From contig NW_003314267.1 of the NCBI RefSeq assembly GCF_000143415.4, positions 3,903,201 to 3,967,200 on the forward strand: DNA of 64,000 nt, written 5' to 3'. The notes beneath the pieces are model-generated. The model was given only the letters and a program-made list of their open reading frames with translations. It was not told the DNA's origin and made no database searches. The DNA is from Selaginella moellendorffii. Taxonomy: Eukaryota; Plantae; Lycopodiophyta. Shown in pieces: positions 30,230-64,000 of the stretch. The number at the start of each line of letters is the position of its first letter. Positions within the stretch are counted from its first letter, which is position 1. The position numbers and the translations under genes were made by a program.

Positions 30230-30373
30230 TTGGAGAGAATGGCGATCCCGGCGTGGGCGTCGGTGTCCCCGGGCTTTGTTTTGGAGAGAATGGCGATCCC
30301 GGCGTGGGCGTCGGTGTCCCCGGGCTTTGTTTTGGAGAGAATGGCGATCCCGGCGTGGGCGTCGGTGTCCCCG
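30230..30373 (+). repeat. Triple 51-bp tandem repeat covering the start codon of an IGPS-like pseudogene
   Basis: ttggagagaatggcgatcccggcgtgggcgtcggtgtccccgg(gctttgtt) x3. Confidence 0.92.
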
Positions 30374-31240
30374 GAGGAGCAGCAGCACCATCGGCGCCTC
30401 ACCTTGCTGCTGCGCAGCAAGCAGAGGGTCCTGAAGGCGCCCCTGGCCGCCATGGATGAGCAGGAGCGGCAGCTTCAGTCGCGGCTGGAGGGACTCCAGA
30501 GAATGCCGCCACCCCAGCACCGGCTGCTGCAGAAGATCGTCCGCACGGCAATCGTGGCCGAGGTCGCGCGGGCCTCTCCGGCGGAGAAGCCAGAGGGCGT
30601 TCGGCAAAGGAGCCACGACTATGTTAAAATGGGTATGGTTTTTTCCTTCGCTCTTTCTCTTTGCGATGTAGTGTTTGAGCTGACGCTATCTCGGTTTGCA
30701 CTGACGAAGAAGTGTCGCCAGATGGAGTTTGGATCTAGAAGCTGTTTCTAAAGGTAACGATTCTTCTTTCTTTCTTATCATGTTCTGACATTGGCAAAAT
30801 TTCCTTGAAGTAATTCCTCGGATGTGCAGCGGTGGAGCCGCCAATTCTTCACAAAGATTGGATCATTCATCCGATACAGGTAGCCAATCCACAATTGTGT
30901 ATCGAACACAAAGCTTTGTGTTGCGTAGATAATCGACACTCGGGATCCGGTACTGCTGCTCTTAGGGCCGTCTACTCAGTTCTTTCCAAAGGAACATGTG
31001 TTTCCGCAAGCTCTGTGAAAGCAATCAATCAAACTCTTCGATTTGCAGGAATGCCATCCTTTCTATGCAACATATAGTGACAGCCGGACTTAAACCAGTT
31101 GTGGAGGTGAGCTTTGGGATTCTTTCTCTGAAACCAAATTAAATCTAGGTTCGTCAATCCCAAGGAGTTCAAAGAACTCTCCACTCTCGACAGTCTTCAG
31201 TTTCAACATTTTAGGTGGAGTTGCAGTATGTTGATTGTCG
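30239..31240 (+). pseudogene. IGPS-like pseudogene copy (exons 1-6 only)
   Basis: Homologous to 48822-49790. Acceptor 1 and donor 4 are lost, there is an in-frame stop, and the 3' end is replaced by a PPDK fragment. Confidence 0.85.
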
Positions 31241-33192: not shown

Positions 33193-35143
33193 ATGGAAAC
33201 GCAAGTCCTGGGCACCAGGAATCTCCATGAAGCCCTCGATCGCCTTGCGCAGTCCAACGCCGCGCTGGTTCCGGCGTCCTATGGTGCTCTTCTCAAAGAA
33301 TGCGGCAATGCCAGGGAGCTGGCGCTGGGCAAGCTCGTCCACTCTCACATCGCCAAGCACGGATCATCCGACAGAGACACATTCCTGGGGAATTTCTTGG
33401 TTCACATGTATGGGCGGTGTGGAAGCATCGACGACGCGCGCAGGGTCTTTGATAGAATCCGGCTGCGCAACGTCTTCTCTAGCAACATCATGATCGCGGC
33501 ATTTGCCGAGAATGGGGATCTTGCTAGCGCGAAGAACTTGTTCGATCGATCGACCGTGAAGAACACCGTGACATGGAACGCAATGATCAATGCGTACGTG
33601 GGCGCTGGCGCGATGGAAGAAGCTAAAGATCTGTTCAAGGCGATGCCAGTGAGAGACGTCGTTTCGTGGAGCGCGATGATCAAAGCAAATGCCGGGAGAG
33701 GGGATTTGGAGATGGCGATTCTTCTGTTCAAGCTCATGGATCTAGATGGAGTGCGGCCGAATCGCGTGACATTCATGTGTGTGCTCGAAGTGTGCGCTGA
33801 TCTAGAGGCAATCACGCTGGGGATCACGATCCACGAGCTCATCCGGGAGGCAGGGCTGGAATCCGAGACGAAGATCGCGAACACGCTCATCCACATGTAT
33901 GGGAGCTGCGGGAACATCCAGAAAGCCAGCGAGATCTTCGAATCGATGCCACACAAATCCACAGTCTCGTGGAATTCCATCGTCTCGGCCTATGCCTGGA
34001 GTGGAGATCTCGATCAAGCCAAGCGCCTGTTCGATCGGATGCCCCAGCGCGACGTGGTGTCGTGGAATTCGATGCTCGTGGCGTATTCCCAGAACGGGCA
34101 TGGCGATCGAGCTCTGGAGCTTTTCTTGGCGATGGATCCCTCGCTGCAAAACGAGGTCACGTTCGTAATCGCGGCGGATGCCTGCGCGAGCCAGGCAGCG
34201 CTGGAAGAGGGCATCGCGATCCACTCGCGAGCATCGGCTCGGGGATTCGATGCCGACATCCGCGTCGCGAATGCGCTGCTCAATCTCTACGCGAAATGCG
34301 GCACGATCGATCGCGCGAAAGATCTCTTCGAGAGGATGATCGAGAGGGACGCTGTCTCGTGGACTGCGATGACCACAGCGTTTAGCCAGAGCGGGCAAGC
34401 ATCAGAGGCACTGCTGATGATCCAGGCGATGGATCTCGAGGGTGTGAAGCTGGATGGATTCACCTACGTGACGGCGCTGGACGCGTGTGCGATCATCACT
34501 CCCCCGGCGGTGGGCGAGGGGCGATCGATCCGATCGAGGCCGTGTTCTACGGCTATGGCGGCGACACCCTTGTGGCCAAAGCGCTCGTCACGCTCCTGGG
34601 CAAATCCGGGAGCGTGGAGGGCGCCAAGAGCGCCTTCGATCGAATTCGCTCCAAGGACGCCGTGTCGCTCAACAGCATGATCGCGATCGATCCGGCGAGG
34701 CGGCGGTGGAGGCGCTGCGATCCATGGCGGCGGAGGGCGTGAGCCCCGATTCCATAACATTCATGAGCGCGCTCTCGGCGTGTAGCCACTCGGGACTGCT
34801 GGATCTGGCCTGGGAGCTCTTCCCGTGCATCGCTGGAGACTATGGGATCGCTCCAGCGATGGATCACTACGTGAGCTTGCTGGATCTGCTGGCTAGAGCT
34901 GGGAGGATTGACGAGGCCGCGGATTTGATCGCCCATATGCCATTTGAGCCGCCGGCGCTGGCGTGGACGATACTGCTGGGCGCCTACAATGCGATGGGGC
35001 AGCAGGGATCCAATGCCGTGGAGCGATCGATGGAGCTAGAGCCCGAGAACTCGGCACACTATGTCCTTCTCTCCAATCTCAGGAGCCCTAAAAACAGGGG
35101 TAGGGTTTTATTTAAAGTTTGGCATGTACAAATTCAAATCTAA
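33193..35143 (+). pseudogene. PLS-class PPR protein with E domain, copy 1, frameshifted
   Basis: Repeated DVVSWNSM..AY / ANALL..Y..CG motifs and E domain LDLLARAG..MPFEP..W..ELEPENSAHYVLLSN. 1-bp deletion at about 34538 and 13-bp deletion at about 34688. Confidence 0.88.
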
Positions 35144-35222
35144 GCCGTTCGTTTACTACCTAGGGTTTCTAGACGCTGGAAGGAGCATCGACGAAAGCCG
35201 CCGCCATTTGCCATCGAGGACG

Positions 35223-35662
35223 ATGCCAAGGGAAGAGCTTGAGCCACTGCATGTTCTTGCTGCTCTACTGGCTTTGATGGTCATCTTTGGAGTAGTCTTT
35301 GGCCATTGCTTTGGTGACGGCTGTGATCATCCCCTGCTGGATGTGGAAGGAGTTCAAGGTTGGGCCATTCCATGTCAAAGCCCTCGGCTTTGCAGGTACT
35401 CTCTCAGTTTTACTTCACATTTCTAGAGAAACTTCTACAGAGCAAAATCGAAGAAACGAGCCCCCAAAGGAACGCAGGACCCGTCGTCCAGATCCAGAGC
35501 AGTGCTCATGTTGCTACTTTGACACTGCGAACTGTAGGTACCATTCTAGATTCGTCAACTAGAAATTCTTGTGAAGCTCAGAGATCTGCTACAACCGTTC
35601 AATTCTACCTCCATTCTGTGAAAACTGCCATTCTTTGGCAAGCTGTTTTGCAGGATATATAA
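35223..35662 (+). pseudogene. Orphan membrane-protein gene copy with frameshifting deletion
   Basis: Paralog of 41013-41469 lacking the GVGTM-coding segment. Confidence 0.5.
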
Positions 35663-36213
35663 TTCCAATAGTTTGACGACTGAGAAAGGAACTCCAAGCA
35701 GGTACCTTTGTGTCACAGTTTGTATGAGCTTTTGCTTCTCATGGAGTCTTCTCTTCCAGGACCAAAGGAGGACTTAGCTCCTCGGTGCTACTCCAAATAA
35801 AAAAGGCTCAACGCCGATATGAAAGTGAAGAACAAAGGCATGAAGCAATGAAAACGTTTCCAAGATCTTTCCTTCTCCTTACCACTGATGCAATATATCA
35901 GAAGAGATCGAGCGACTGGTGTTTAACACGACTTGTGCGATTCCATAGAAGGCGCGTTGCGCCAAGAGGATGGCGGCCCTGCGTGCCTTGGGTGATGGCG
36001 CTTGATCCGGCCACGGAAGGTCCTCCCTGGCAAGGCTCAGTGCCGTCGCATTGCTTTCGCGTTCTCAGGTACTTATCGAGTTCCTGCGCGCTGTTCGCAA
36101 TTTCTGCGATGAACCAGGATTTGTTCCTTGCCGAGCAGTAGCACTCAGAAGCGCTTATGCAGCAGTGGTGGAGAGCAGGCACAGGTTTCCATCTGGAAGT
36201 CGGATCACAATAC

Positions 36214-36333
36214 TGTTAGAACTAAGCTGAACATGCACAGAACCAGGGCAGGTAGCTCACTGGTAAAGCACCTGGCGCCGGTGTAGGAGGTCCTGGGTTC
36301 AATCCCCGGCCTATCCAGATCCATTTTCCAACA
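36214..36333 (+). mobile_element. 120-bp solo LTR-like insertion carrying a tRNA-like sequence (Helenus-type TRIM LTR)
   Basis: Termini TGTT...AACA. 5-bp TSD AATAC (36209-36213, 36334-36338). Empty site present in the paralog at about 43594-43625 (minus). tRNA-like cloverleaf at 36246-36317 with A box, B box GGTTCAATCC and a downstream TTTT. Confidence 0.8.
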
Positions 36334-36339
36334 AATACT

Positions 36340-36925
36340 GGAGTCAAGTTCGGCTGTTGCTCTACGTAGCATAGAGGCGTTCAGGCAAATCGAAGAGATT
36401 GGCTTTCACAGAGCTTGCGGAAACACACGGATCTTTGGAAAGAACTGAGTAGATGGCCGTAAGAGCAGCAGCACCGGATTATCTACGCAACACAAAGCTT
36501 TGTGTTCGATACACAATTGTGGATTGGCTACCTATATCGGATGAATGATCCAATTTTTGCGAAGAACTGGCAGGAATTACTTTGCACAAACTTGAGAAAC
36601 TTTGCCAACATGATAAGAAAGAAAGAAGAATTGCTACCTTTAGAAACAACTTCTAGATCCAAACTCCATCTGGCGATTCTTTGTCGGTTCAAACCAAGAT
36701 AGCGTCAGCTCAAACACTCGAAAGAGCGAAGGAAAAAACCGTACCCCATTTAACATAGTCCTGGCTCCTTTTGGCTTCTCCACGGGAGAAGCCCGCGCGA
36801 CCTCGGCCACAATCGCCGTGCGGACGAGCAGCCGGTGCTGGGGTGGAGCCCCTGCAGACGCAACTGGAGCTGCCGCTCCTGCTCATCCATGGCGGCCAGG
36901 GGTGCCTTCAGGACCCTCTGCTTGC
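36340..36925 (-). pseudogene. IGPS-like pseudogene fragment (inverted)
   Basis: Reverse complement of 48910-49620, with deletions. Confidence 0.8.
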
Positions 36926-37928
36926 CGCGAGCCTGGGAATCCCACGGGGTTATATGCCTGCCAGTGGTAAGGAGAAAAGTTTTGGTTCTGAGAAGAAAGG
37001 AGGATGCTTTACTCGTACCTCTGCGCGTTCTTTCCTCTCTTTCAGGCAACCCCGACCACCAAACTCTGATCGACTTCATTCATTCCACAACTAAAGTGTG
37101 CTCTCCAACTTTTTCTTGCAGGATTTCGAAGAAGTTTTCAGGTGCGTCGCTTGCAAAGTTTCGTCTGATCGCCCACAAGACTGGCTGGTGAGTGGCTTGC
37201 ACAGTTTTAGCGATCTTCTCCACTTGATCAGCCGGGAGGGAGATGACGCTTCCGGAGGTGATGTAGAGAACCAAGCGGTGAGGTTGTTTGTCCAACCAGC
37301 TGATACTGATGTCTTCTTCTGGAGAACTGATAGTTTCGTGCTCTTGCAGAAGCGCCTGAGGTATAAGTGGTCCGACTGGCAGATAGTTGAGAAACTCTTT
37401 CCTGCGCGAAGTCACAAGTTCGTGATCCAGCTCCTCGATGGAGTTGACGAGAACACACGCAGCTTCCTTTGTTTGCTTTGCAGCAGCTCCCAGAAGAAGC
37501 ACAACAGGACCGCCGCGCTGGAAGCCAAGAGGAAGCAGTCTCCTCGGGAAAGGCTCGAGGCCGGGGGCTCCACAAGTGCCTGTCTTGCGCCAGTCAGCAG
37601 TTGGAGCCTTCTTAACGCACTGTGGATGGAACTCGGTGCTAGAGGCCCTGCTCTATGGAGTACCGACACTTTGCTGGCCGTGCGCCTACGAGCAGAACTC
37701 GAATGCTGATATAATGACGGAGAAGTGGAAGCTGGGGTGAAGTTGGCTGATGGACCCGACGATGGTGTCAAATGCGAAGACTTGGAGAAGATCATAGATG
37801 CTGTAATGAATGGCGAAGAAGGAAAAACAATGAGACGCAGAGCCGAAGCTCTCAAGGAGATTGTGAGGAAAAGTGCCTCGAGAAAAACATTCGGCAACTC
37901 AAGAACGTGATTGTAGCCGCTTCTCAGT
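36925..37928 (+). pseudogene. UGT-C pseudogene with internal inversion 37081-37563
   Basis: 5'-truncated copy of UGT-C. The middle segment (PGLE...HTLVVE) is flipped and the flanks stay in + orientation. Confidence 0.88.
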
Positions 37929-38445
37929 AGACAATCTCCAAGCATCGCTGCTCTGGAGAAGCTCCACTCACTTTAACGAAAGTCAGGAAAAAGAAGAGAG
38001 AAAAGAAAAAAGAAAATAAATACCTTTGAGAGGAGCTTCCACATCGATCACTGATCTCGAAGCAGAAACATCGCTGGTCTGGAGAAGAAGCTCCACCCGT
38101 GAAAAATAAAAAATCTAGCACTTTCTACAGAGCTCTCTTACCTTGAAGATTAAGATCGATGAAGAAATCTCCAAACGAACTTCGAAAAGGTGGAACCAAA
38201 GTTAGCGAGATCACACACACACACACAGATGCATACCTTGAGAACAGCTTCCACATCCATTTGGCAATGCCTTGGCAAACGCAACGAATAATCAATGAAT
38301 CGAAAGAACCACTACACTTACCCGGATTTTCGCCAAAGATCTTCGGTCGCCGCCCGGCGCTGCTTTTTCTCGCGTCCACCCCTTGAATCCATGGCCGCTC
38401 CCCTCCTTGGATCCATGGCGCTCCCCCCAAAAACCAAACTTTAAA

Positions 38446-40371
38446 TCAAACCCTACCCCTGTTTTTAGGGCTCCTGAGATTGGAGAGAAGGACATAGTGT
38501 GCCGAGTTCTCGGGCTCTAGCTCCATCGATCGCTCCACGGCATTGGACTGCTGCCCCATCGCATTGTAAGCGCCCAGTAGTATCGTCCACGCCAGCACCG
38601 GCGGCTCAAATGGCATATGGGCGATCAAATCCGCGGCCTCGTCAATCCTCCCAGCTCTAGCCAGCAGATCCAGCAAGCTCACGTAGTGATCCATCGCTGG
38701 AGCGATCCCATAGTCTCCAGCGATGCACGGGAAGAGCCCCCAGGCCAGATCCAGTAGTCCCGAGTGGCTACACGCCGAGAGCGCGCTCATGAATGTGATG
38801 GAATCGGGGCTCACGCCCTCCGCCGCCATGGATCGCAACGCCTCCACCGCCGCCTCGCCGGATCCATTCGCGGCGTAGATCGCGATCATGCTGTTGAGCG
38901 ACACGGCGTCCTTGGAGCGAATTCGATCGAAGGCGCTCTTGGCGCCCTCCACGCTCCCGGATTTGCCCAGGAGCGTGACGAGGGCGTTGGCCACAAGGGT
39001 GTCGCCGCCATAGCCGTAGAACACGATGCTCGCGAGTGGATTGCGATGCCCTCTTCCAGCGCTGCCTGGCTCGCGCAGGCATCCGCCGCGATCACGAATG
39101 TGAATCCATCCAGCTTCACACCCTCGAGATCCATCGCCTGGATCATCAGCAGTGCCTCTGACGCTTGCCCGCTCGGGGCGTAGATCGCGATCATGCTGTT
39201 GAGCGACACGGCGTCCTTGGAGCGAATTCGATCGAAGGCGCTCTTGGCGCCCTCCACGCTCCCGGATTTGCCCAGGAGCGTGACGAGGGCGTTGGCCACA
39301 AGGGTGTCGCCGCCATAGCCGTAGAACCCGATGCTCGCGAGTGGATTGCGATGCCCTCTTCCAGCGCTGCCTGGCTCGCGCAGGCATCCGCCGCGATCAC
39401 GAATGTGACCTCGTTTTGCAGCGAGGGATCCATCGCCAAGAACAGCTCCAGAGCTCGATCGCCATGCCCGTTCTGGAAATACGCCACGAGCATCGAATTC
39501 CACGACACCACGTCGCGCTGGGCATCCGATCGAACAGGCGCTGGGCTTGATCGAGATCTCCACTCCAGGCATAGGCCGAGACGATGGAATTCCACGAGAC
39601 TGTGGATTTGTGTGGCATCAATTCGAAGATCTCGCTGGCTTTCTGGATGCTCCCGCAGCTCCCATACATGTGGATGAGCGTGTTCGCGATCTTCGTCTCG
39701 GATTCCAGCCCTGCCTCCCGGATGAGCTCGTGGATCGTGATCCCCAGCGTGATTGCCTCTAGATCAGCGCACACCTCGAGCACACACATGAATGCCACGC
39801 GATTCGGCCGCACTCCATCTAGATCCATGAGCTTGAACAGAAGAATCGCCATCTCCAAATCCCCTCTCCCGGCATTTGCTTTGATCATCGCGCTCCACGA
39901 AACGACGTCTCTCACTGGCATCGCCTTGAACAGATCTTTAGCTTCTTCCATCGCGCCAGCGCCCACGTACGCATTGATCATTGCGTTCCATGTCACGGTG
40001 TTCTTCACGGTCGATCGATCGAACAGGTTCTTCGCGCTAGCAAGATCCCCATTCTCGGTAAATGCCGCGATCATGATGTTGCTAGAGAAGACGTTGCGCA
40101 GCCGGATTCTATCAAAGACCCTGCGCGCGTCGTCGATGCTTCCACACCGCCCATACATGTGAACCAAGAAATTCCCCAGGAATGTGTCTCTGTCGGATGA
40201 TCCGTGCTTGGCGATGTGAGAGTGGACGAGCTTGCCCAGCGCCAGCTCCCTGGCATTGCCACATTCTTTGAGAAGAGCACCATAGGACGCCGGATCCAGC
40301 GCGGCGTCGGACTGCGCAAGGCGATCGAGGGCTTCGTGGAGATTCCTGGTGCCCAGGACTTGCGTTTCCAT
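38446..40371 (-). pseudogene. PLS-E PPR, copy 2, frameshifted with ~305-bp internal tandem duplication
   Basis: Inverted copy of 45182-46804. 1-bp deletion after FDRMP. Duplicated block at about 38873-39100 / 39178-39405. Confidence 0.88.
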
Positions 40372-40931
40372 GCCACATACTAGAATATACTTAAATATGC
40401 TACATTCAAACAACGTCTCGCCCCTATAGCTTCAAATCATTTCTAGGTTTGGCAAAGAGAGACCGGCGACTAGGGAGCGCGCGATAGAGACGAGAGAGTA
40501 AGCGATGGCGGAATGTGATGAAGACGATGATGATGTATGGTTTCTTCTTTGATTCTCGGATGAAATCCCCTCCATTCTCTCCATAATCTTTCTTCTTTCT
40601 TCAGATTCTCGAGGATTCTTGGACGGTAGGCTCATTTCTTGCGAAATTTCAATCCTAATCTTCGTTCATGACCCTGGAACGCGAAGATCGATCGCGCCGA
40701 TGACGAAGCGGTAAGTTCTACTTCGTAATCTCGGTTCTTTCCAGCGTCTGGCCTTGATTCCCAGAGCGCAAGCGGCATATGGACGCAGATCGTGAGTTTC
40801 CTTGACAACAAGCGGAGAAAGGAGCTCCAACGACGCAAGTATCAAGCCCGGAAGAGTTTGTGCCTCGCCATGCCGGTGCCAAAGGTACAAATTCAAATCT
40901 AAGCCGTTCATTTACTACCTAGGGTTTCTAG

Positions 40932-41469
40932 ATGCCAAAGCTGGAGGCTCGATCGAAGCAGCCGCTGGAGCAGGAGCATCGACGAAAGCCGCCGCCATTG
41001 CCATCGAGGACCATGCCAAGGGAAGAGCTTGAGCCACCGCATGTTCTTGCTGCTCTACTGGCTTTGATGGTCATCTTTGGAGTAGTCTTTGGTGGGGTGG
41101 GTACGATGGCCATTGCTTTGGTGACGGCTGTGATCATCCCCTGCTGGATGTGGAGGGAGTTCAAGGTTGGGCCATTCCATGTCAAAGCCCTCGGCTTTGC
41201 AGGTACTCTCTCAGTTTTACTTCACATTTCTAGAGAAACTTCTACAGAGCAAAATCGAAGAAACGAGCCCCCAAAGGAACGCAGGACCCGTCGTCCAGAT
41301 CCAGAGCAGTGCTCATGTTGCTACTTTGACACTGCGAACTGTAGGTACCATTCTAGATTCGTCAACTAGAAATTCCTGTGAAGCTCTGAGATCTGCTACA
41401 ACCGTTCAATTCTACCTCCATTCTGTGAAAACTGCCGTTCTTTGGCAAGCTGTTTTGCAGGATATATAA
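40932..41469 (+). CDS. Orphan small membrane protein (ATG 40932 or 41013, putative 31-nt intron 41203-41233)
   Basis: Two hydrophobic segments HVLAALLALMVIFGVVFGGVGTMAIALVTAVIIPCWMW. Conserved across paralogs. Confidence 0.5.
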
Positions 41470-41787
41470 TTCCAATAGTTTGACGACTGAGAAAGGAACT
41501 CCAAGCAGGTACCTTTGTGTCACAGTTTGTATGAGCTTTTGCTTCTCATGGAGTCTTCTCTTCCAGGACCAAAGGAGGACTTAGCTCCTCGGTGCTACTC
41601 CAAATAAAAAAGGCTCAACGCCGATATGAAAGCGAAGAACACAAAGGTATGAAGCAATGAAAACGTTTCCAAGGTCTTTCCTTCTCCTTACCACTGATGC
41701 AATATATCAGAAGAGATCGAGCGACTGGTGTTTAACACGACTTGTGCGATTCCATAGAAGGCGCGTTGCGCCAAGAGGATGGCGATT

Positions 41788-42201
41788 CTGCGTGCCTTGG
41801 GTGATGGCGCTTGATCCGGCCACGGAAGGTCCTCCCTGGCAAGGCTCGGCGCCGTCGCCTTGTTTTCGCCGTCGCCTTGTCTTCTTCTGCAGAACTGATA
41901 GTTTCGTGCTCTTGCAGAAGCGCCTGAGGTACGAGTGTGCGTGCCTTGGGTGATGGCGCCCGATCCGGCCACGGAAGGTCCTCCCTGGCAAGGCTCGGCG
42001 CCGTCGCCTTGTCTTCTTCTGGAGAAGTGATAGTTTCGTGCTCTTGCAGAAGCGCCTGAGGTACGAGTGTGCGTGCCTTGGGTGATGGCGCCCGATCCGG
42101 CCACGGAAGGTCCTCCCTGGCAAGGCTCGGCGCCGTCGCCTTGTCTTCTTCTGGAGAAGTGATAGTTTCGTGCTCTTGCAGAAGCGCCTGAGGTACGAGT
42201 G
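41788..42201. repeat. Chimeric 132-bp tandem repeat (x3) of ataxin-10 (+) and UGT-C (-) pieces
   Basis: GGTACGAG recurs at 41928, 42060 and 42192. 44-aa repeat in ORF 41732-42571. Confidence 0.9.
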
Positions 42202-42622
42202 GTCCGACTGGCAGATAGTTGGGAAACTCTTTCCTGCGCGAAGTCACAAGTTCGTGATCCAGCTCCTCGATGGAGTTGACGAGAACACACGCAGCTTCCT
42301 TTGTTCGCTTTGCAGCAGCTCCCAGAAGAAGCACAACAGGACCGCCGCGCTGGAAGCCAAGAGGAAGCAGTCTCCTCGGGAAAGGCTCGAGGCCGGGAAT
42401 GAAGTCGATCAGAGTTTGGTGGTCGGGGTTGCCTGAAAGAGAGGAAAGAACGCGCAGAGGTACGAGTAAAGCATCCTCCTTTCTTCTCAAAACCAAAGCT
42501 TTTCTCCTTACCACTGGCAGGAATATAACCCCGGGACTCGAGCTCTGGGATATGGTAGAGGAGCACCTCATTGATCGCGTGACTGGTGTTTAAGGCGACC
42601 TGTGGGATTCCCAGGCTCGCGG
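42140..42622 (-). pseudogene. UGT-C middle fragment
   Basis: Matches 47920-48403, including the intron. Confidence 0.85.
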
Positions 42623-43210
42623 CAAGCAGAGGGTCCTGAAGGCAGCCCTGGCCGCCATGGATGAGCAGGAGCGGCAGCTCCAGTTGCGGCTGCAGGGGCT
42701 CCAGAGAGTGCCGCCACCCAGCACCGGCTGCTGCAGAAGATCGTCCGCACGGCGATTGTGGCCGAGGTCGCGCGGGCTTCTCCGGTGGAGAAGCCAGAGG
42801 GCGTTGGGCAAAGGAGCCAGGACTATGTTAAATGGGGTACGGTTTTTCCTCAGATGTGTAGCGGTGGAGGTGCCAGTTCTTCGTAAAAAATTGGATCATT
42901 CATCCGATACAGGTAGCCAATCCACAATTGTGCATCGAACACAAAGCTTTGTGTTGCGTAGATAATCTGGTGCTGCTGCTCTTACGGTCATCTACTCAGT
43001 TCTTCGTGTGTTTCCGCAAGCTCTGTGAAAGCCAAACTCTTCTATAGGAACGCCTCTACGCTACGTATAGCGACAGCCGAATTTGACCCAGTTGTGGAGG
43101 TGAGCTGTGGGATTCTTTCTCTGAAACCAAACCAAATTCAGGTTCGTCAATCTCAAAAAGCTTGAGTAACTCTCCCATTTCAGTTGGACTTGCAATGCGT
43201 TGATTGACAT
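42622..43210 (+). pseudogene. IGPS-like pseudogene fragment
   Basis: Matches exon 1 (3' part) and exons 3-6 of 48822-50108, with deletions. Confidence 0.8.
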
Positions 43211-44135
43211 AGATCTCTCTCTCTCCCCCCCCTCCATTCCTTGCTTTTCTGCCTCGCCCTCGCTCGGTCGCAATGCTGATAAGCTGGCCGACGCCTCTCC
43301 CTAGTCTCATGAAAATAGAATGGATATGTAAAATGCCTTGCATAGACAGACACGTATATCTAAACGTCATTTGCGTCAGGTAGTTGGTCCCAAAAAAGAA
43401 GAACTCCGCGATATGTCAAAGAATCCTCAAGAAAGATTATGAGTGTCCTAGAACTCTGTAAGAACTATTTTGATAGGGATATCAATTTGCGCGAAGAACT
43501 TTGACCAAGTTGACTTGGTCAGCGGTTTATAAGGTGGTGAACTTTTCCAGAAGAAACAATGAGAGGACTGACACAAGTTACTAGCCAATGTTCCAGTATT
43601 GTGATCCGACTTCCAGATGGAAACCTGTGCCTGCTCTCCACCACTGCTGCATAAGCGCTTCTGAGTGCTACTGCTCGGCAAGGAACAAATCCTGGTTCAT
43701 CGCAGAAATTGCGAACAGCGCGCAGGAACTCGATACGTACAAAGCAAGGCGACGGCGCCGAGCCTTGCCAGAGAGGACCTTCCGTGGCCGGATCAAGCAC
43801 CATCACCCAAGGCACGCAGAATCGCCATCCTCTTGGCGCAACGCACCTTCTATGGAATCGCACAAGTCGTGTTAAACACCGGTCGCTCGATCTCTTCTGA
43901 TATATTGCATCAGTGGTAAGGAGAAGGAAAGATCTTGGAAACGTTTTCATTACTTCATACCTTTGTGTTCTTCGCTTTCATATCGGTGTCGAGCCTTTTT
44001 GATTTGGAGTAGTACCGTGGAGCTAACTCCTCCTTTGGTCCGGGAAGAGAAAACTCGATGAGAAGCAAAAGCTCATACAAACTGTGACACAAAGGTACCT
44101 GCTTGGAGTTCCTTTCTCAGTCGTCAAACCTGGAA

Positions 44136-44670
44136 TTATATATCCTGCAAAACAGCTTGCCAAAGAACGGCAGTTTTCACAGAATGGAGGTAGAATTGAA
44201 AGGTTGTAGCAGATCTCTGAGCTTCACAAGAATTTCTAGTTGACGAATCTAGAATGGTACCTACAGTTCGCAGTGTCAAAGTAGCAACATGAGCACTGCT
44301 CTGGATCTGGACGACGGGTCCTGCGTTCCTTTGGGGGCTCGTTTCTTCGATTTTGCCCTGTAGAAGTTTCTCTAGAAATGTGAAGTAAAACTGAGAGAGT
44401 ACCTGCAAAGCCGAGGGCTTTGACATGGAATGGCCCAACCTTGAACTCCCTCCACATCCAGCAGGGGATGATCACAGCCGTCACCAAAGCAATGGCCATC
44501 GTACCCATCCCACCAAAGACTACTCCAAAGATGACCATCAAAGCCAGTAGAGCAGCAAGAACATGCAGTGGCTCAAGCTCTTCCTTGGCATCGTCCTCGA
44601 TGGCAACGGCGGCCTTTCGTCGATGCTCCTGCTCCAGCGGCTGCTTCGATCGAGCCTCCAGCTTTGGCAT
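44136..44670 (-). CDS. Orphan small membrane protein, inverted copy
   Basis: Mirror of 40932-41469. Compensating -2/-1 indels keep the frame from the upstream ATG. Confidence 0.5.
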
Positions 44671-45181
44671 CTAGAAACCCTAGGTAGTAAATGAACGGCT
44701 TAGATTTGAATTTGTACCTTTGGCACCGGCATGGCGAGGCACAAACTCTTCCGGGCTTGATACTTGCGTCGTTGGAGCTCCTTTCTCCGCTTGTTGTCAA
44801 GGAAACTCACGATCTGCGTCCATATGCCGCTTGCGCTCTGGGAATCAAGGCCAGACGCTGGAAAGAACCGAGATTACGAAGTAGAACTTACCGCTTCGTC
44901 ATCGGCGCGATCGATCTTCGCGTTCCAGGGTCATGAACGAAGATTAGGATTGAAATTTCGCAAAGATTATGGAGAGAATGGAGGGGATTTCATCCGAGAA
45001 TCAAAGAAGAAAGCATACATCATCATCGTCTTCATCACATTCCGCCATCGCTTACTCTCTCGTCTCTATCGCGCGCTCCCTAGTCGCCGGTCTCTCTTTG
45101 CCAAACCTAGAAATGATTTGAAGCTATAGGGGCGAGACGTTGTTTGAATGTAGCATATTTAAGTATATTCTAGTATGTGGC

Positions 45182-46804
45182 ATGGAAACGCAAGTCCTGG
45201 GCACCAGGAATCTCCACGAAGCCCTCGATCGCCTTGCGCAGTCCGACGCCGCGCTGGATCCGGCGTCCTATGGTGCTCTTCTCAAAGAATGTGGCAATGC
45301 CAGGGAGCTGGCGCTGGGCAAGCTCGTCCACTCTCACATCGCCAAGCACGGCTCATCCGACAGAGACACATTCCTGGGGAATTTCTTGGTTCACATGTAT
45401 GGGCGGTGTGGAAGCATCGACGACGCGCGCAGGGTCTTTGATAGGATCCGGCTGCGCAACGTCTTCTCTAGCAACATCATGATCGCGGCATTTACCGAGA
45501 ATGGGGATCTTGCTAGCGCGAAGAACCTGTTCGATCGATCGACCGTGAAGAACACCGTGACATGGAACGCAATGATCAATGCGTACGTGGGCGCTGGCGC
45601 GATGGAAGAAGCTAAAGATCTGTTCAAGGCGATGCCAGTGAGAGACGTCGTTTCGTGGAGCGCGATGATCAAAGCAAATGCCGGGAGAGGGGATTTGGAG
45701 ATGGCGATTCTTCTGTTCAAGCTCATGGATCTAGATGGAGTGCGGCCGAATCGCGTGGCATTCATGTGTGTGCTCGAGGTGTGCGCTGATCTAGAGGCAA
45801 TCACGCTGGGGATCACGATCCACGAGCTCATCCGGGAGGCAGGGCTGGAATCCGAGACGAAGATCGCGAACACGCTCATCCACATGTATGGGAGCTGCGG
45901 GAGCATCCAGAAAGCCAGCGAGATCTTCGAATTGATGCCACACAAATCCACAGTCTCGTGGAATTCCATCGTCTCGGCCTATGCCTGGAGTGGAGATCTC
46001 GATCAAGCCCAGCACCTGTTCGATCGGATGCCCCAGCGCGACGTGGTGTCGTGGAATTCGATGCTCGCGGCGTATTCCCAGAACGGGCATGGCGATCGAG
46101 CTCTGGAGCTGTTCTTGGTGATGGATCCCTCGCTGCAAAACGAGGTCACGTTCGTGATCGCGGCGAATGCGTGCGCGAGCCAGGCAGCGCTGGAAGAGGG
46201 CATCGCGATCCACTCGAGGGCCGTGTTCTACGGCTATGGCAGCGACACCCTTGTGGCCAACGCGCTCGTCACGCTCCTGGGCAAATCCGGGAGCGTGGAG
46301 GGCGCCAAGAGCGCCTTCGATCGAATTCGCTCCAAGGACGCCGTGTCGCTCAACAGCATGATCGCGATCTACGCCGCGAATGGATCCGGCGAGGCGGCGG
46401 TGGAGGCGTTGCGATCCATGGCGGCGGAGGGCGTGAGCCCCGATTCCATCACATTCATGAGCGCGCTCTCGGCGTGTAGCCACTCGGGACTACTGGATCT
46501 GGCCTGGGGGCTCTTCCCGTGCATCGCTGGAGACTATGGGATCGCTCCAGCGATGGATCACTACGTGAGCTTGCTGGATCTGCTGGCTAGAGCTGGGAGG
46601 ATTGACGAGGCCGCGGATTTGATCGCCCATATGCCATTTGAGCCGCCGGTGCTGGCGTGGACGATACTACTGGGCGCTTACAATGCGATGGGGCAGCAGG
46701 GATCCAATGCCGTGGAGCGATCGATGGAGCTAGAGCCCGAGAACTCGGCACACTATGTCCTTCTCTCCAATCTGAAGAGCCCTAAAAACAGGGGTAGGGT
46801 TTGA
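45182..46804 (+). CDS. PLS-class PPR protein with E domain, copy 3, open frame (540 aa), organellar RNA-editing factor family
   Basis: Intronless ORF with P/L/S motifs and an E domain, no DYW. Lacks about one PLS triplet present in copy 1. Confidence 0.85.
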   Translation: METQVLGTRNLHEALDRLAQSDAALDPASYGALLKECGNARELALGKLVHSHIAKHGSSDRDTFLGNFLVHMYGRCGSIDDARRVFDRIRLRNVFSSNIMIAAFTENGDLASAKNLFDRSTVKNTVTWNAMINAYVGAGAMEEAKDLFKAMPVRDVVSWSAMIKANAGRGDLEMAILLFKLMDLDGVRPNRVAFMCVLEVCADLEAITLGITIHELIREAGLESETKIANTLIHMYGSCGSIQKASEIFELMPHKSTVSWNSIVSAYAWSGDLDQAQHLFDRMPQRDVVSWNSMLAAYSQNGHGDRALELFLVMDPSLQNEVTFVIAANACASQAALEEGIAIHSRAVFYGYGSDTLVANALVTLLGKSGSVEGAKSAFDRIRSKDAVSLNSMIAIYAANGSGEAAVEALRSMAAEGVSPDSITFMSALSACSHSGLLDLAWGLFPCIAGDYGIAPAMDHYVSLLDLLARAGRIDEAADLIAHMPFEPPVLAWTILLGAYNAMGQQGSNAVERSMELEPENSAHYVLLSNLKSPKNRGRV

Positions 46805-57355: not shown

Positions 57356-59179
57356 CTCGCCTTCACCCTAGCCTGCTTCCATTTACAATATTGCGCACAT
57401 TAGGTTTTCGCGTCATTTACATGTTATTCTGGTATTTCCATATTATTATAGTAGCGGTTTAAAATTAGCATAAAGGATTTATCCATTTAATTTTTCACAT
57501 TATTAATTTATCTAGACCTGAAATATAGCAAAGTTGACTTCTTCAAGGAGGATTTTTTAGGGCGTGTTTTGCTTGGACTTATAGCATTACTGGGTGGTGC
57601 AAGTTTGTGCTGCCCAAAGTCCAAAACACAGTATAAGGTTTTGGAAGTATATGATATGGGCATAAAGGATCTTCAATGATGCCCAAAGTCCAAAACATGG
57701 TATAAGGTTGGAAGTATCTTAAATGATGCCCCAAAGGATTTACAGATGGGATTTTAGTGGATAATGGAGTTATGGTGGATAACAACATGGGGAGACAAAA
57801 CACTCTAAAAATCATTGTTAAACACTCTTAAACACAGAAACCCCAACAAGTGTCTTGAGTTCAGCCACTATGTTGTGAGAGAGTTGGTATTGTTTTCTTA
57901 GCATGCAGGGAGTCCCCTTATATACAACATGCTCTAGTGCCTTGACACCCTCATTGCATGATTTCTTGTGGTTTTTTTGGCTGGTTGGGGAAATCTAGTG
58001 GCCCTAAGAGTTTTGTGAGCATTCAAGAGAGAACTTGACATAGTCTTTTTTCCAACTAGGTCTCTTGCTTGAGGCTTCTATAAGTCATGCTTGTACCTTT
58101 GGGGCAAGAGGTTTAGTGGAGCCCTAGCTAATGCTTTTACATCTTCTAGGTCGAGTTGTTAGACTGGTGACACATAAGCTAGCTATGACAAGTTTGATTG
58201 TACAACTTGCTTTGGTATTAGAGGAGTTGAGTTGTTGGTCCATCTGGAAGGACAAGTGCAACAAATGGATAATAGACTAGATAGTGGTTGTGAGTAGATA
58301 AAAGTGATGGTGATGAGGTCTGGATTGATCTAATATAGAGAAGAATTTGAAAACCATGGGAGAAAAGCCAGGAAATGTATGAACTCTTAGATGATTGAAG
58401 CTGATGCCACCTCAAAACTGAAATCTAAGCCCAAGCTTGCTACCATAATGATAGAAAGGCAAGTAGAAAAGAGTGAAAAAAAAGAAAAGAAAAAAACAAA
58501 GAAAATAAAGAAGAGAAATAAAAAGTCACTATAAGAGAAGTTGATAGTGATTTCAGAAGTTGCTTAATATTGTTGTGTTGTAGCATGCTCCAAGTGAACA
58601 AAGAGTGTTTGGAAGGAGGCTAGAGACACCAATGAAGTTTCCAAAGCTGCATGTCACATCAACTCATCAAGGTCCCACTACAACTTTGATCCCACTACAA
58701 CTTTAAGCAAAAATATAGAATTATGCTTGATATCATGAGGTTGAGAGATCCTAGGACAAAGTGCCTCTAAAGTCTGGAATGTAGTCTAAGTCATTGTGAA
58801 TTTGGTGGACAAGTTGAATAGTGTTGTCTGTGAAAAAAGGCCACAATCATGTTAGGTGATGCTTTGGCTGGGATCCTATGGTTCCAGTGAGCTGATGTCA
58901 CCTCTAAGTACTGGAGAGGCTAGAGAAGAATGAACTATTGCAAAAATGAACTTGCCACTATTGCCACCTTTGACAAGTAGCAACATTGGGAGTTTTATGT
59001 ATGCATATGTTTCATCTGGCTGCTACAAGTGATTGCTAAGGACCCTGGAAAAGGCCTCCAAACAATCTAGAGAAGGCGTTGCAGCTGAAAATAAACTTTA
59101 AATCATTGTTGATATGTTTATATTCGTGCTCCTTGTGCCAGACCTATGCCATCCTCAACAAACAATCCACACTAAGAAA

Positions 59180-59380
59180 TTCTATTAAATACTCAAGAAA
59201 ACACTCCTGGACTGTGATTGTCTATGCATTTGCTCAGAACAAGGATCTTATAGCAGCTCTAGAATTGTTCTGGGCATGCATCCTGGATGTGGTTGAGTTC
59301 TCACTACTTACAACCATGTTAGGTGCATAGAGTGAGTATGGGTGAAAGTGCATATAATTATAGAGGCAAGGTAATATAGA
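59180..59380 (+). pseudogene. Degenerate PPR fragment
   Basis: SWTVIVYAFAQNKDLIAALELF resembles a PPR motif, followed by stops. Confidence 0.5.
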
Positions 59381-59479
59381 GTTAGACCAAGCCATCTGAG
59401 CTATAATCCTTTTACTTCAATTCTAGTTGCCCCTCTTCTCAATCATTCTCCAATCTACTCATTGTAACTGTACATTCCA

Positions 59480-60160
59480 AACATTGCTAGAAGTCTTCTC
59501 CAAGTGCTTTGTTAAAATATCTATATAGTATGGATGCAATCCTAACTTACCTTTATATCCCAAATAAGTTGGAATTGCCTTGGAGAATATTAATAAACTT
59601 CTCACTATCAAATCAATCAAATCTTTATATAAGGGTTTCCCAAGATATGGATTACAAACCAGATTATCCCTTTGTATAAATCCAATGATCCAGTTAAAAT
59701 GGCAAATTATTGAACCCAGATTATCTCCAATATATTTATGAAACTCTTTGCTTGCTTGATGAAAAAACAACTCTTAGTTTGGGTGGAAAGTTGTTATCTT
59801 CATGCAAATGGCAAAATAGACTTTTGCCGCTATTACTCTTGTGTAGACCAACTTCTCACTCTCTAAGTATTGCTAGAGTAGTATTTGTTCATATGTAATT
59901 GAGTGGTCTTCCTTGGCTATATCAATTTATGAAGCTTTTGATCAGATGCCACAACATTTGCTCATTCAAAGATTACTTGAAATTCAAGTGCCTTCCACTT
60001 GTTGCTATTGTGAACTCTATAGAACTATGCAGTTGTAACTCTTTGATAGGGCATCAATTCCTTCTAAGGTTGGAGTCTAGCAAGGCTATCCTTTATTACT
60101 AGCTCTTTGATATTTACATTGATGCACTAGAGTCCATAATTGAAGGAAGAACACTCATGC
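59480..60160 (+). mobile_element. Degenerate LINE reverse-transcriptase remnant
   Basis: Broken + frames give EAFDQMP and VGV*QGYPLL..FDIYIDALE, resembling the KAFD and GVRQGCPLSP.LFNIYID RT motifs. Confidence 0.55.
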
Positions 60161-60327
60161 CATACCATTATTAGTAGCTTAGAGCACTCAAAATATTCTA
60201 ATTCTCAATATATTCCTCTCTATATAAAAGCCATGTGAGAGTGAGCAAGGGCTAGAGGGCATTTAGGGCTTATAGAAGAGTTTGAATTTGTGATAGAGGT
60301 ATTGAGAGCTTGAGACATAGAAGTTGG

Positions 60328-60904
60328 TGTAAAAAACCAAAGGGAACAATTCGAAAGACAATCTATAAGAGTTCAAATATAAAAGAAAATGGCCCATGAA
60401 TAAGAGTGCACCCCTTTTCCAATAAATTAAGAGTTTTAAAATACTTGGGGTTAAGCGTCTTTGGGTTTGAATAGTATTGTTCTAGGTGACATCGTGGGAA
60501 ATCCAAACTCAAGAGCTTACATTTGGTATTAGAAGTGTCTCAAATTTGGCTTTATTAGTTGACTTAAAGGAATCACACTACATATTAAGATTAGCATCTG
60601 GCAGGTCTAGCATGGTGGATTGTAAGCGACCAAAGAAAACAAGGACAGTGTGGTGGATTGTAAGCGACCAAAAAGAACAATATTCTTGTGAACTTGCACG
60701 GAAGTATGGTGGATTGTAAATAAAAAAAAAAAAATGAAAGACAATCCATAGGGGTTTAAATATAAAGGGAAATGGCTTATGAACAAGAGTGTAGCCTTTT
60801 TTCCAATCAGTTAAAGGTTTTGGGATACTTAGGATTAAGTGTTGTTGGATTTAAATAATACTAGACTAGATGATTTCCCCGGAAGTCCAAACTTAGAGTT
60901 TACA
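60328..60904 (+). mobile_element. Cassandra-like TRIM 1 (LTRs 60328-60521 and 60715-60904)
   Basis: TG...CA LTRs and a perfect 5-bp TSD GTTGG. Met-type PBS TGGTATTAGA at 60524 and TGGTGGAT before LTR2. 5S-like core GTTAAGCGT..GGGAAATCC at 60450-60504. Confidence 0.8.
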
Positions 60905-61635
60905 GTTGGAAGATAATTCTCATCTCCCAAGAAATGGTGAACTCAGTGTGATGGATTAATTTAGCTTTTTTTAGAAAATGAGAGAATTATTATTTAGAGT
61001 GTAAACTCATAGATTTGAAGTTTTTACCACTATTTTTCAACTTTCCTTTGTTTTGTTTAGTTTCAAAAAAATTTTAGATGACAAAAGTATTCATTTTGGT
61101 TTTGCTTTATTTCGGTGAAACAATTTTAACTCCTATTTCCAACAATTTAAAGAACCTAAAACTAAATTGTGAAAATAAGGGAAAATATAAGAGGAAAATG
61201 CTTATATGTGGCTTGATTTTTCACTTAGTTTTAGAAGTTTAAGTTTGAGAGTTTGGCATCAATTTGAGAAGTCATAAAATCTTTTACTTTATCTTGCTCT
61301 CTTTTTTTTAATTTTTTCACGACTATATTTTAGAACTCTAAGAGTGAGATTTTTTGAGTGTTCTCTGAATATTTCTTTTGTGGGTCTTTTCTTTTGTTCT
61401 TTAGCTTTCATAACAAATTTAAGAAGCTTATTCTTTATTGTTTTATCATCATTTTCTTTTTTCTTGAGTGTGTTGGATAGATATCTTCTAGAGCTTTTTG
61501 CCATGTGTTTGCATATGGAATTTAATGCCAATTTAAAGAGTTTAGAGGGATTTTCCACTTATGTTTATTTATTTTGAGTATAAGAAGTGGTTTTAGCTAT
61601 TTTCATGCAATTCTGAGTAGTTTAGCCATATAGTT

Positions 61636-62218
61636 TGTATAACCAACTAAAGAGAACAACTTGAAAGATAATCCATAGGAGTTCAAATGTAAAAGGAAAA
61701 AGCTCATGAATAAGAGTGCACCCTCTTTTTCAAACAATTAATGTTCTTGAGATATTTGGGGTTAAGTGTCATTAGGTTTGGGATGGGTGACTTCTTGGAA
61801 AGTCTAAATTCAAGAGTTTATATTTGATATTAGAGAGGTTTTGGTCCAAATTTCCCATGAAGAGCTTATATTTGGTATCAGAGAGGTCTCACTCCGGCTC
61901 TGTTGATTGGTTAGGGGAATTAGATTACATGTTAAGATTAACATTTAGTAGGTCTAGTTTACTTTGGTTGGGCTCGATCTAAAGGGTAGGGAGAGCTATG
62001 GCTCTCAGCTTTCGTTCACAAAGGTATAAACAACTAAAAGAAATGACTAAAGAGACGATCTATAGGGGTTCAAACATAAAGGGAAAGGGCTTATAAATAA
62101 AAGTGCACTTTATTTTCTAAATAGTTAAGATCTTGGGATATTTGGGGTTAAACATCCTTGGGTTTAAATAATACTAAAATGGGTGATCTTTTGGGAAGTC
62201 TAAATTCAAGCCCTTACA
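61636..62218 (+). mobile_element. Cassandra-like TRIM 2 (LTRs ~61636-61822 and ~62023-62218)
   Basis: Same LTR family. PBS TGGTATCAGAG at 61873 and 5S-like GGATGGGTGACTTCTTGGAAAGTC. No clean TSD. Confidence 0.7.
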
Positions 62219-62849
62219 ATTGACATCAAAGACTTTTCAACTTACTTTTAATTATGATTTTTGGTGCTCTAAAGCTCAAGATACTTATGTTTTTTGCATC
62301 TATGAGCTTGTGAATACTAATGAGTGATAATTTTTAGGTTTCTTCTGAAGTTTTACAACTATATATTTTGGTTGTAAAATAGATTTAAAGGATTCCTGTA
62401 GTGCATATGATCATGGGATGAGATTTGGATATACTATCATTGTGGATCTTTGGAACCTTGAGGGATAAATGGGGATAAAATAACTATTAAGGGTTCTTTC
62501 ATCAAGCAATTACCCCTTTTTCAATTGGCTTAAGAGGAGTTCCAAAAGCCAAGAAGTTTCACTCTTTAGGAGTATTTATTGTAATCTAGCATTTGTAATG
62601 ATTATAGAATTTTATGCCCATTCACACCAAATCAATGCACATTCGACATCTACTTACTATCAACACTATCCTATGGTTGGGGGCCATCATTCACGTATCC
62701 ACCACAAGCTAAATTATCAGATAGCTCTCTTAGTTAAAGTGGATTTAGAGTTTTCTACAGATAGTAAGTTCAAGCATCCACTACTTATAGCAGTTCTTTC
62801 TAAAATCTATATTGTATAGCATGGGATAGACTTGCCTTACTTCTTAGGC

Positions 62850-63720
62850 AATGGAGACATCTTGGCCAGAATACACATTCTTCACTTTGAGCAATATTAT
62901 GTATCGAATGGCATTGGTAGTGACAATTACAACCTTTGAGACTTCTCTCAATTGCTTACTAGTTGAGCAATTGCATAAGCAAAGACTCTTTTGGAGGTTG
63001 ATATGATAAAGTATGCCACATTCAAGGCCTTCTTCAAGTCACACTTTGATCAATAGTAGATATTGAATCATTTACTTATGGACTTATTTGCATTTTAGCA
63101 AGGAGTTCCTAAATCGGTACTAGACTATGTGAATATTTTTGTGCCTATTGAAAAGAGTGTGTGAGGTGATCACTAATGAGCCCCACAACATCACAAAATT
63201 CATCTTTTAGCTCAAGGAAAATATCCAATACAAGATGTTTAAGAGACAATTTAAAATGTGTTATAAAGCTTTTGCAACTACAGAGAATTTAAAGTGTGAT
63301 CTTCTCCAGAAGTTTGGTATCTCCAGGGTTGAGGAGGCTTTCCTCCCCTCCTCAATGGATGCTCTATTAATAGTCATTGATGACAAATTTTCTATGGTGA
63401 TTGAAAAGACTTTAATAAAGCTTATAGGGTATAAAGAGATCAATAGTAGATGTAGGAGAAGATGCTTGAAGAGCTCTATGTTTGCCATTTATAATAAATT
63501 GAGAAGCCACAATATGCTCCATGCTCTTAGTATTGCTCCTATTGTGATGTCACAACTCACAACATAGAGAGGTGTTGGAAGCTTCATCTAAAGTTGTGGC
63601 CACCACATTCTCAACATATTTAAAAGCAACCATTTGTTGATAATAACATTACAACATAAAGGAAGAATCACTACTAGTAACAATTTGAGCAACATATGAT
63701 CGAAGATGCACCTTCATCAT
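62850..63720 (+). mobile_element. Degenerate LTR-retrotransposon gag remnant
   Basis: Zinc knuckle CSYCDVTTHNIERCWKLH (CX2CX4HX4C) at 63534-63575 amid stops. Confidence 0.6.
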
Positions 63721-64000
63721 CTTTTAGTAAAGGGAAGGCTTTAATTGGATAGGTCAATACCATTAAAATTGCTGAGGAAGAGTTCATAAAGATAGCAAAC
63801 ATAAGGGCATAAAAGAAGAAAGCACTTACTCATGAGGAAATCGATAGCAATCTAACTTCTTTAGTGATCATTAATCCAACACCCAAGATGGCATGTAAGC
63901 TCCTATTCACATCTCTTCTAGATGTCTTCCACTTTTCTCTAGTAGTTCCTAAGTCTTTAAGAGTGCACTTCAATAGTTGATGGAGGCATTCATCACCTTT

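Follow-up and report, generated by a model that had tools for sequence, protein, structure and literature searches.

A probable solo LTR of Helenus-1_SMo with a tRNA-like core in a duplicated gene cluster of Selaginella moellendorffii

A 120-bp insert bounded by TGTTAG...CCAACA and flanked on both sides by AATAC lies at positions 36214-36333 of the window, the 64,000-nucleotide stretch of Selaginella moellendorffii DNA analyzed here. Judged from its sequence, this insert is very probably (a probability of about 0.95) a solo LTR of Helenus-1_SMo. Helenus elements are TRIMs (terminal-repeat retrotransposons in miniature) whose LTRs contain tRNA-derived sequence (Kojima 2024, Biology 13:119, PMC10886601), and Helenus-1_SMo of S. 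moellendorffii is the sole plant Helenus family described (PMC10886601). The element thus belongs to an already known family, published in 2024 from the same assembly, and is not new. An earlier note on this DNA, which had brought up the name Helenus, had the correct family, with 115 of 120 positions matching the Helenus-1_SMo LTR consensus. Its suggestion that the insert was possibly an undescribed family does not hold, since the published family shares the assembly, the LTR length, and the target site duplication (TSD) length in addition to this match.

The insert and its target site contain the following features:

36209-36213, plus strand: left TSD copy, AATAC, read from the sequence; a single AATAC is present at the paralogous site
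36214-36333, plus strand: probable solo LTR of Helenus-1_SMo, 120 bp, TGTTAG...CCAACA, from the sequence and the published consensus
36246-36317, plus strand: tRNA-like core of the LTR, 72 nt, from a match to Rfam RF00005
36253-36263, plus strand: box A-like TAGCTCACTGG, where the consensus has TAGCTCAGTGG
36297-36307, plus strand: box B-like GGTTCAATCCC, within the tRNA-like core
36324-36327, plus strand: TTTT run, 7 nt past the tRNA-like core, also in the family consensus
36334-36338, plus strand: right TSD copy, AATAC, read from the sequence
36339-36342, plus strand: TGGA, the last bases in common with the left-hand paralogous site and the junction of a deletion, from blastn block boundaries and a four-copy alignment

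Direct reading of the sequence bears out the 120-bp insert, its ends, and the AATAC on both sides as they had first been described, and the TTTT said to follow the tRNA-like part is present at 36324-36327. The LTR is laid out as a 32-bp leader, the 72-nt tRNA-like core, and a 16-bp trailer. Its ends form a short terminal inverted repeat (TGTTAG versus TGTTGG), and the element finishes in ...CCATTTTCCAACA without a tail.

Family membership and the solo state

The published Helenus-1_SMo element measures 325 bp in full, of which each LTR takes up 120 bp and the internal part 85 bp, and its TSDs are 5 bp long (PMC10886601). Its source assembly is GCA_000143415.2 (PMC10886601, Table S1), and its consensus, which was built from multiple genomic hits, is given in Data S1 of the same paper. 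The window corresponds to GL377571.1:3903201-3967200, at the scaffold end, and 32,859 bp of it are identical to GL377571.1:3927146-3960004 (GCA_000143415.2, Selaginella moellendorffii v1.0). The insert is located at GL377571.1:3939414-3939533 and so has the same host species as the published family.

We compared the insert by eye, in 10-base blocks, with the sequence in Data S1 (PMC10886601). It is identical to the LTR consensus at all but five positions, without indels, and both ends are identical. The identity is not confined to the tRNA-like core but takes in the leader (32 bp), the trailer (16 bp), and the two termini. The insert therefore resembles Helenus-1_SMo in species, assembly, LTR length, TG..CA ends, and the 5-bp length of the TSD, and its core and T4 run are found at the same places. 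As in Helenus generally, a tRNA-derived sequence with boxes A and B lies inside the LTR. The promoter motifs named for Helenus are TRGCY..YGG and GGTTC (PMC10886601), and the insert contains TAGCT..CTGG for the former along with GGTTC.

Full-length Helenus elements contain a PBS and a PPT between two LTRs, and their replication is described as LTR retrotransposon-like and dependent on an autonomous helper (PMC10886601). The published internal part of Helenus-1_SMo starts with the PBS, TGGTATCGGAGC, and ends in a purine run (PMC10886601, Data S1). Compared with such a full element, the locus is missing the 85-bp internal part, with its PBS and PPT, and the second LTR. A blastn search found no second copy of the 120 bp in the 64-kb window. 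A scan of metagenome contigs for the two LTR ends with a variable gap gave 0 hits, an expected outcome that carries no weight for a plant element. Matches to the family PBS with up to 2 mismatches number 7 across the whole window versus 4.15 expected, none of them near the LTR, and the best of these carry 2 mismatches, which is the level of chance. Since no PBS match rises above chance and the LTR is single-copy in the window, the locus is a solo LTR, and because it is without a PBS or PPT, the remnant cannot transpose. This agrees with the earlier proposal of a solo LTR bounded by TG..CA and flanked by a 5-bp TSD, as there is no internal part nearby and no second LTR. A solo LTR with an intact TSD is what LTR-LTR recombination is expected to leave, and remnants of this kind, with their 5-bp TSDs, are common in Helenus (PMC10886601).

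A history that would account for this structure begins with the reverse transcription of a 325-bp element, in which two LTRs enclosed the 85-bp internal part and its PBS and PPT. The integrase of an autonomous LTR retrotransposon would have inserted it, duplicating the 5-bp target AATAC, and recombination between the two 120-bp LTRs would later have removed the internal part and one LTR. We thus infer an earlier full-length state at this locus. The family PBS TGGTATCGGAGC differs by one base from the PBS usual in plants, which pairs with the 3' end of initiator tRNA-Met, and this nearness to the initiator tRNA-Met type would fit an LTR-retrotransposon helper.

The tRNA-like core and the question of Pol III

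The Rfam tRNA model (RF00005) matches 36246-36317 on the plus strand with 39.6 bits (E 1.7e-6) over its full length, model positions 1-71. Since this exceeds the RF00005 gathering score of 29 bits, the likeness to tRNA goes beyond chance. The Rfam scan covered 35500-37000 at E up to 10, and within it there was no 5S rRNA match. ARAGORN called no tRNA over the whole 64-kb window. A scan for bacterial promoters and terminators, irrelevant to this plant locus, was blank as well.

A functional tRNA gene would have an intact cloverleaf and a standard anticodon arm, and the core has neither. There is a C.A mismatch in the acceptor stem and another in the D stem, and the covariance-model alignment contains an irregular anticodon arm with a 9-nt anticodon loop, consistent with the degenerate arm seen in the earlier note. 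The minimum-free-energy fold of the 72-nt core yields no cloverleaf, and its stability is no better than that of shuffled sequence (z +0.61). The statement that this segment folds as a tRNA thus stands as one of homology, given the Rfam score, and fails as one of folding, because thermodynamic folding gives no cloverleaf and ARAGORN was blank.

The differences between this copy and the consensus are the following:

LTR position 27, window 36240: consensus C, copy G
LTR position 47, window 36260: consensus G, copy C
LTR position 53, window 36266: consensus G, copy A
LTR position 64, window 36277: consensus A, copy G
LTR position 100, window 36313: consensus G, copy A

Three of these five substitutions harm features of the tRNA-like part: box A is weakened by one (AGTGG to ACTGG), while the D stem and the acceptor stem each lose a pair to one of the other two. 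The consensus is the better tRNA mimic, with a fully paired acceptor (GGGCAGG/CCTGTCC, including one G.U pair), a perfect D stem (GCTC/GAGC), and a canonical box A, TAGCTCAGTGG. These five differences amount to a divergence of 4.2% from the consensus, compared with 4-8% among the surrounding paralogous copies (blastn). With a divergence similar to that of the paralogs, the copy is not demonstrably young on sequence grounds, and the description of the element as recently mobile is unsupported.

With a type-2 Pol III promoter, transcription of a full Helenus element would presumably begin near LTR position ~30, and a template of roughly 290 nt would result if the polymerase passed the T4 run (LTR positions 111-114) of the 5' LTR and stopped at that of the 3' LTR. 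The remnant keeps what reads as a decayed tRNA-type internal promoter (boxes A and B) together with the T4 run, and the TTTT at 36324-36327 is a candidate Pol III terminator. From these elements the remnant could at most give a short Pol III transcript of ~85 nt, and its box A is weakened. Pol III transcription has not been validated for any Helenus (PMC10886601), and the earlier description of the element as Pol III-driven is likewise unsupported.

The target site, its paralogs, and the adjoining deletion

The insert sits in c1, a decayed, pseudogenised copy within a cluster of local duplications, where it interrupts no gene of the annotation. Left of the insert, c1 shares 94.1% identity with copy c2 (44606-43594, minus strand), 95.9% with c4, and 91.5% with c3. 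In c2, the paralogous site at 43594-43625 (minus strand) reads GGATCACAATACTGG, with a single AATAC and no insert, so the empty site that had been claimed here is confirmed, with the limit that it matches c1 only through AATAC plus TGGA. No other paralog is informative for the target site, as c3 has a small deletion there and c4 stops ~150 bp short. Since only c2 keeps the target site, and keeps it empty, the insertion post-dates the c1/c2 split; the proposal that it came later than the local duplication is supported by c2 alone among the paralogs.

To the right of the insert, c1 lacks ~490 bp that are kept by c2 (43593-43093, minus strand) and c3 (31673-31092, minus strand), and c5 (~49.6-50.1 kb) keeps the right-hand part of this missing stretch. 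Once the LTR and one copy of the TSD are taken out, c1 reads ...CACAATAC TGGA GTCAAG..., and c2 reads ...CACAATAC TGGA ACATTGG... and, ~490 bp further on, ...CCACAAC TGG GTCAAA.... The homology of c1 to the IGPS-like segment of the paralogs resumes at 36337, equivalent to ~43092 (blastn, four-copy alignment). The deletion junction has 4 bp of microhomology, CTGG, and is 0-4 bp from the right-hand TSD. Because the deletion abuts the insert on its right, only the left side documents a clean insertion.

The deletion is unlikely to stem from ectopic recombination between two nearby Helenus copies, as this predicts that the right TSD would be ACAAC, as in c2, c3, and c5, but AATAC was found. We give a low probability to a more elaborate reading in which TRIM integration or LTR-LTR recombination may have provoked a microhomology-mediated deletion of the flank and in which, separately, Pol III may still make a tRNA-like RNA of ~85 nt.

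The cluster of local duplications occupies ~30000-50100 of the window, with copies in direct and inverted orientation. Its units are a PPR gene, an unnamed unit "A" (~1 kb, with products of 187-210 aa and no Pfam match), an IGPS-like unit "B", and a UDP-glycosyltransferase (UGT). Identity among the copies ranges from 71 to 98%, and frameshifts or truncations affect several of them. The v1.0 assembly contains two haplotypes. No second haplotype was seen for this region: the 90% clusters of three PPR proteins, among them the two intronless ones encoded 2-4 kb from the insert, contain no protein from another contig. A GenBank gene record for a 540-aa PPR product covers 33946-46804 of the window, a length of 12.9 kb that spans several called genes and the solo LTR, and it is probably a gene-model artefact arising from near-identical paralogs.

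Tandem repeats are also found in the cluster. At 41867-42201 there is an array of 2.5 copies of a 132-bp unit with 99% identity, and this unit is chimeric, joining a ~74-bp piece of unit "A" to a ~60-bp piece that recurs beside a UGT fragment at ~37310-37369. The IGPS-like copy of c3 contains, at 30230-30374, 2.8 tandem copies of a 51-bp unit with 100% identity. Both ends of the window, 1-2000 and 58000-64000, are AT-rich, with a GC content of 0.33-0.37 versus ~0.50 elsewhere. A near-canonical initiator-tRNA-Met PBS-like motif, TGGTATCAGAGA, is found at 61873-61884 and may mark an LTR retrotransposon.

Alternative origins and related elements

A tRNA-derived SINE (SINE2), which depends on Pol III for its transcription and on target-primed reverse transcription by a LINE for its insertion, would share several properties with the insert: a tRNA-like core whose boxes A and B form an internal promoter within a short interspersed repeat, a T-run, a short length, and flanking direct repeats. 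However, the A-rich or simple-repeat 3' tail is absent, and 32 bp of leader precede the tRNA-like part, whereas a SINE would begin at the Pol III start. The TG..CA ends, the short terminal inverted repeat, and a TSD of exactly 5 bp also argue against a SINE2, as does the match of the whole length to the LTR of a family with a PBS and PPT between two such repeats (PMC10886601). We consider a SINE2 origin very unlikely, and the missing tail, the 32-bp leader, the ends, and the TSD length bear out the earlier note in rejecting it. The two kinds of element differ in how they move, SINE2 being mobilized by a LINE and Helenus by an LTR-retrotransposon integrase. The origin proposed for Helenus is a SINE2 inserted into the LTR of a TRIM (PMC10886601).

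The insert could also have arrived as filler DNA, with part of a Helenus LTR or of a tRNA pseudogene locus serving as template when a double-strand break was repaired and ~490 bp were lost. Deletion accompanied by insertion is typical of break repair in plants, and the junction of the deletion, which is specific to c1, is 0-4 bp from the insert. Exact TG and CA limits and a length of exactly 120 bp are unexpected for captured sequence, however, and the 5-bp duplication perfectly repeats a target that the paralog has only once, leaving this origin only a very small chance. Smaller still is the probability that the insert is an ordinary tRNA pseudogene in its original position, with direct repeats present by chance. 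The Rfam match above the gathering score and a T-run behind the core, as in real tRNA genes, would be expected of one, but c2 lacks the insert, the match to the Helenus-1_SMo LTR consensus takes in the 32-bp leader and 16-bp trailer, several stems are mismatched, and ARAGORN gave no call.

Read as a solo LTR of Helenus-1_SMo, the insert also invites comparison with Cassandra, a gene-less miniature LTR retrotransposon with 5-bp TSDs and the promoter of a small-RNA gene in each LTR. Kojima groups Cassandra and Helenus as "TRIMp3" (PMC10886601). The module in Cassandra, which is found in ferns and seed plants, is derived from 5S rRNA, whereas that of the insert is tRNA-like. The two also differ in size, whole Cassandra elements being 565-860 bp compared with 325 bp for Helenus-1_SMo with its 120-bp LTR (PMC10886601). 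For Cassandra, unlike Helenus, there are reports of Pol III transcripts (PMC10886601).

Whether Pol III drives Helenus is a question of the family and not of this locus, and a copy as degraded as this one is a poor test case for it. The significance of the insert is mainly for annotation, as one more decayed solo LTR of an already described family. Helenus copies that score above the Rfam tRNA threshold can inflate counts of tRNAs or pseudo-tRNAs in the S. moellendorffii genome, a point that has likewise been made for rust fungi (PMC10886601).
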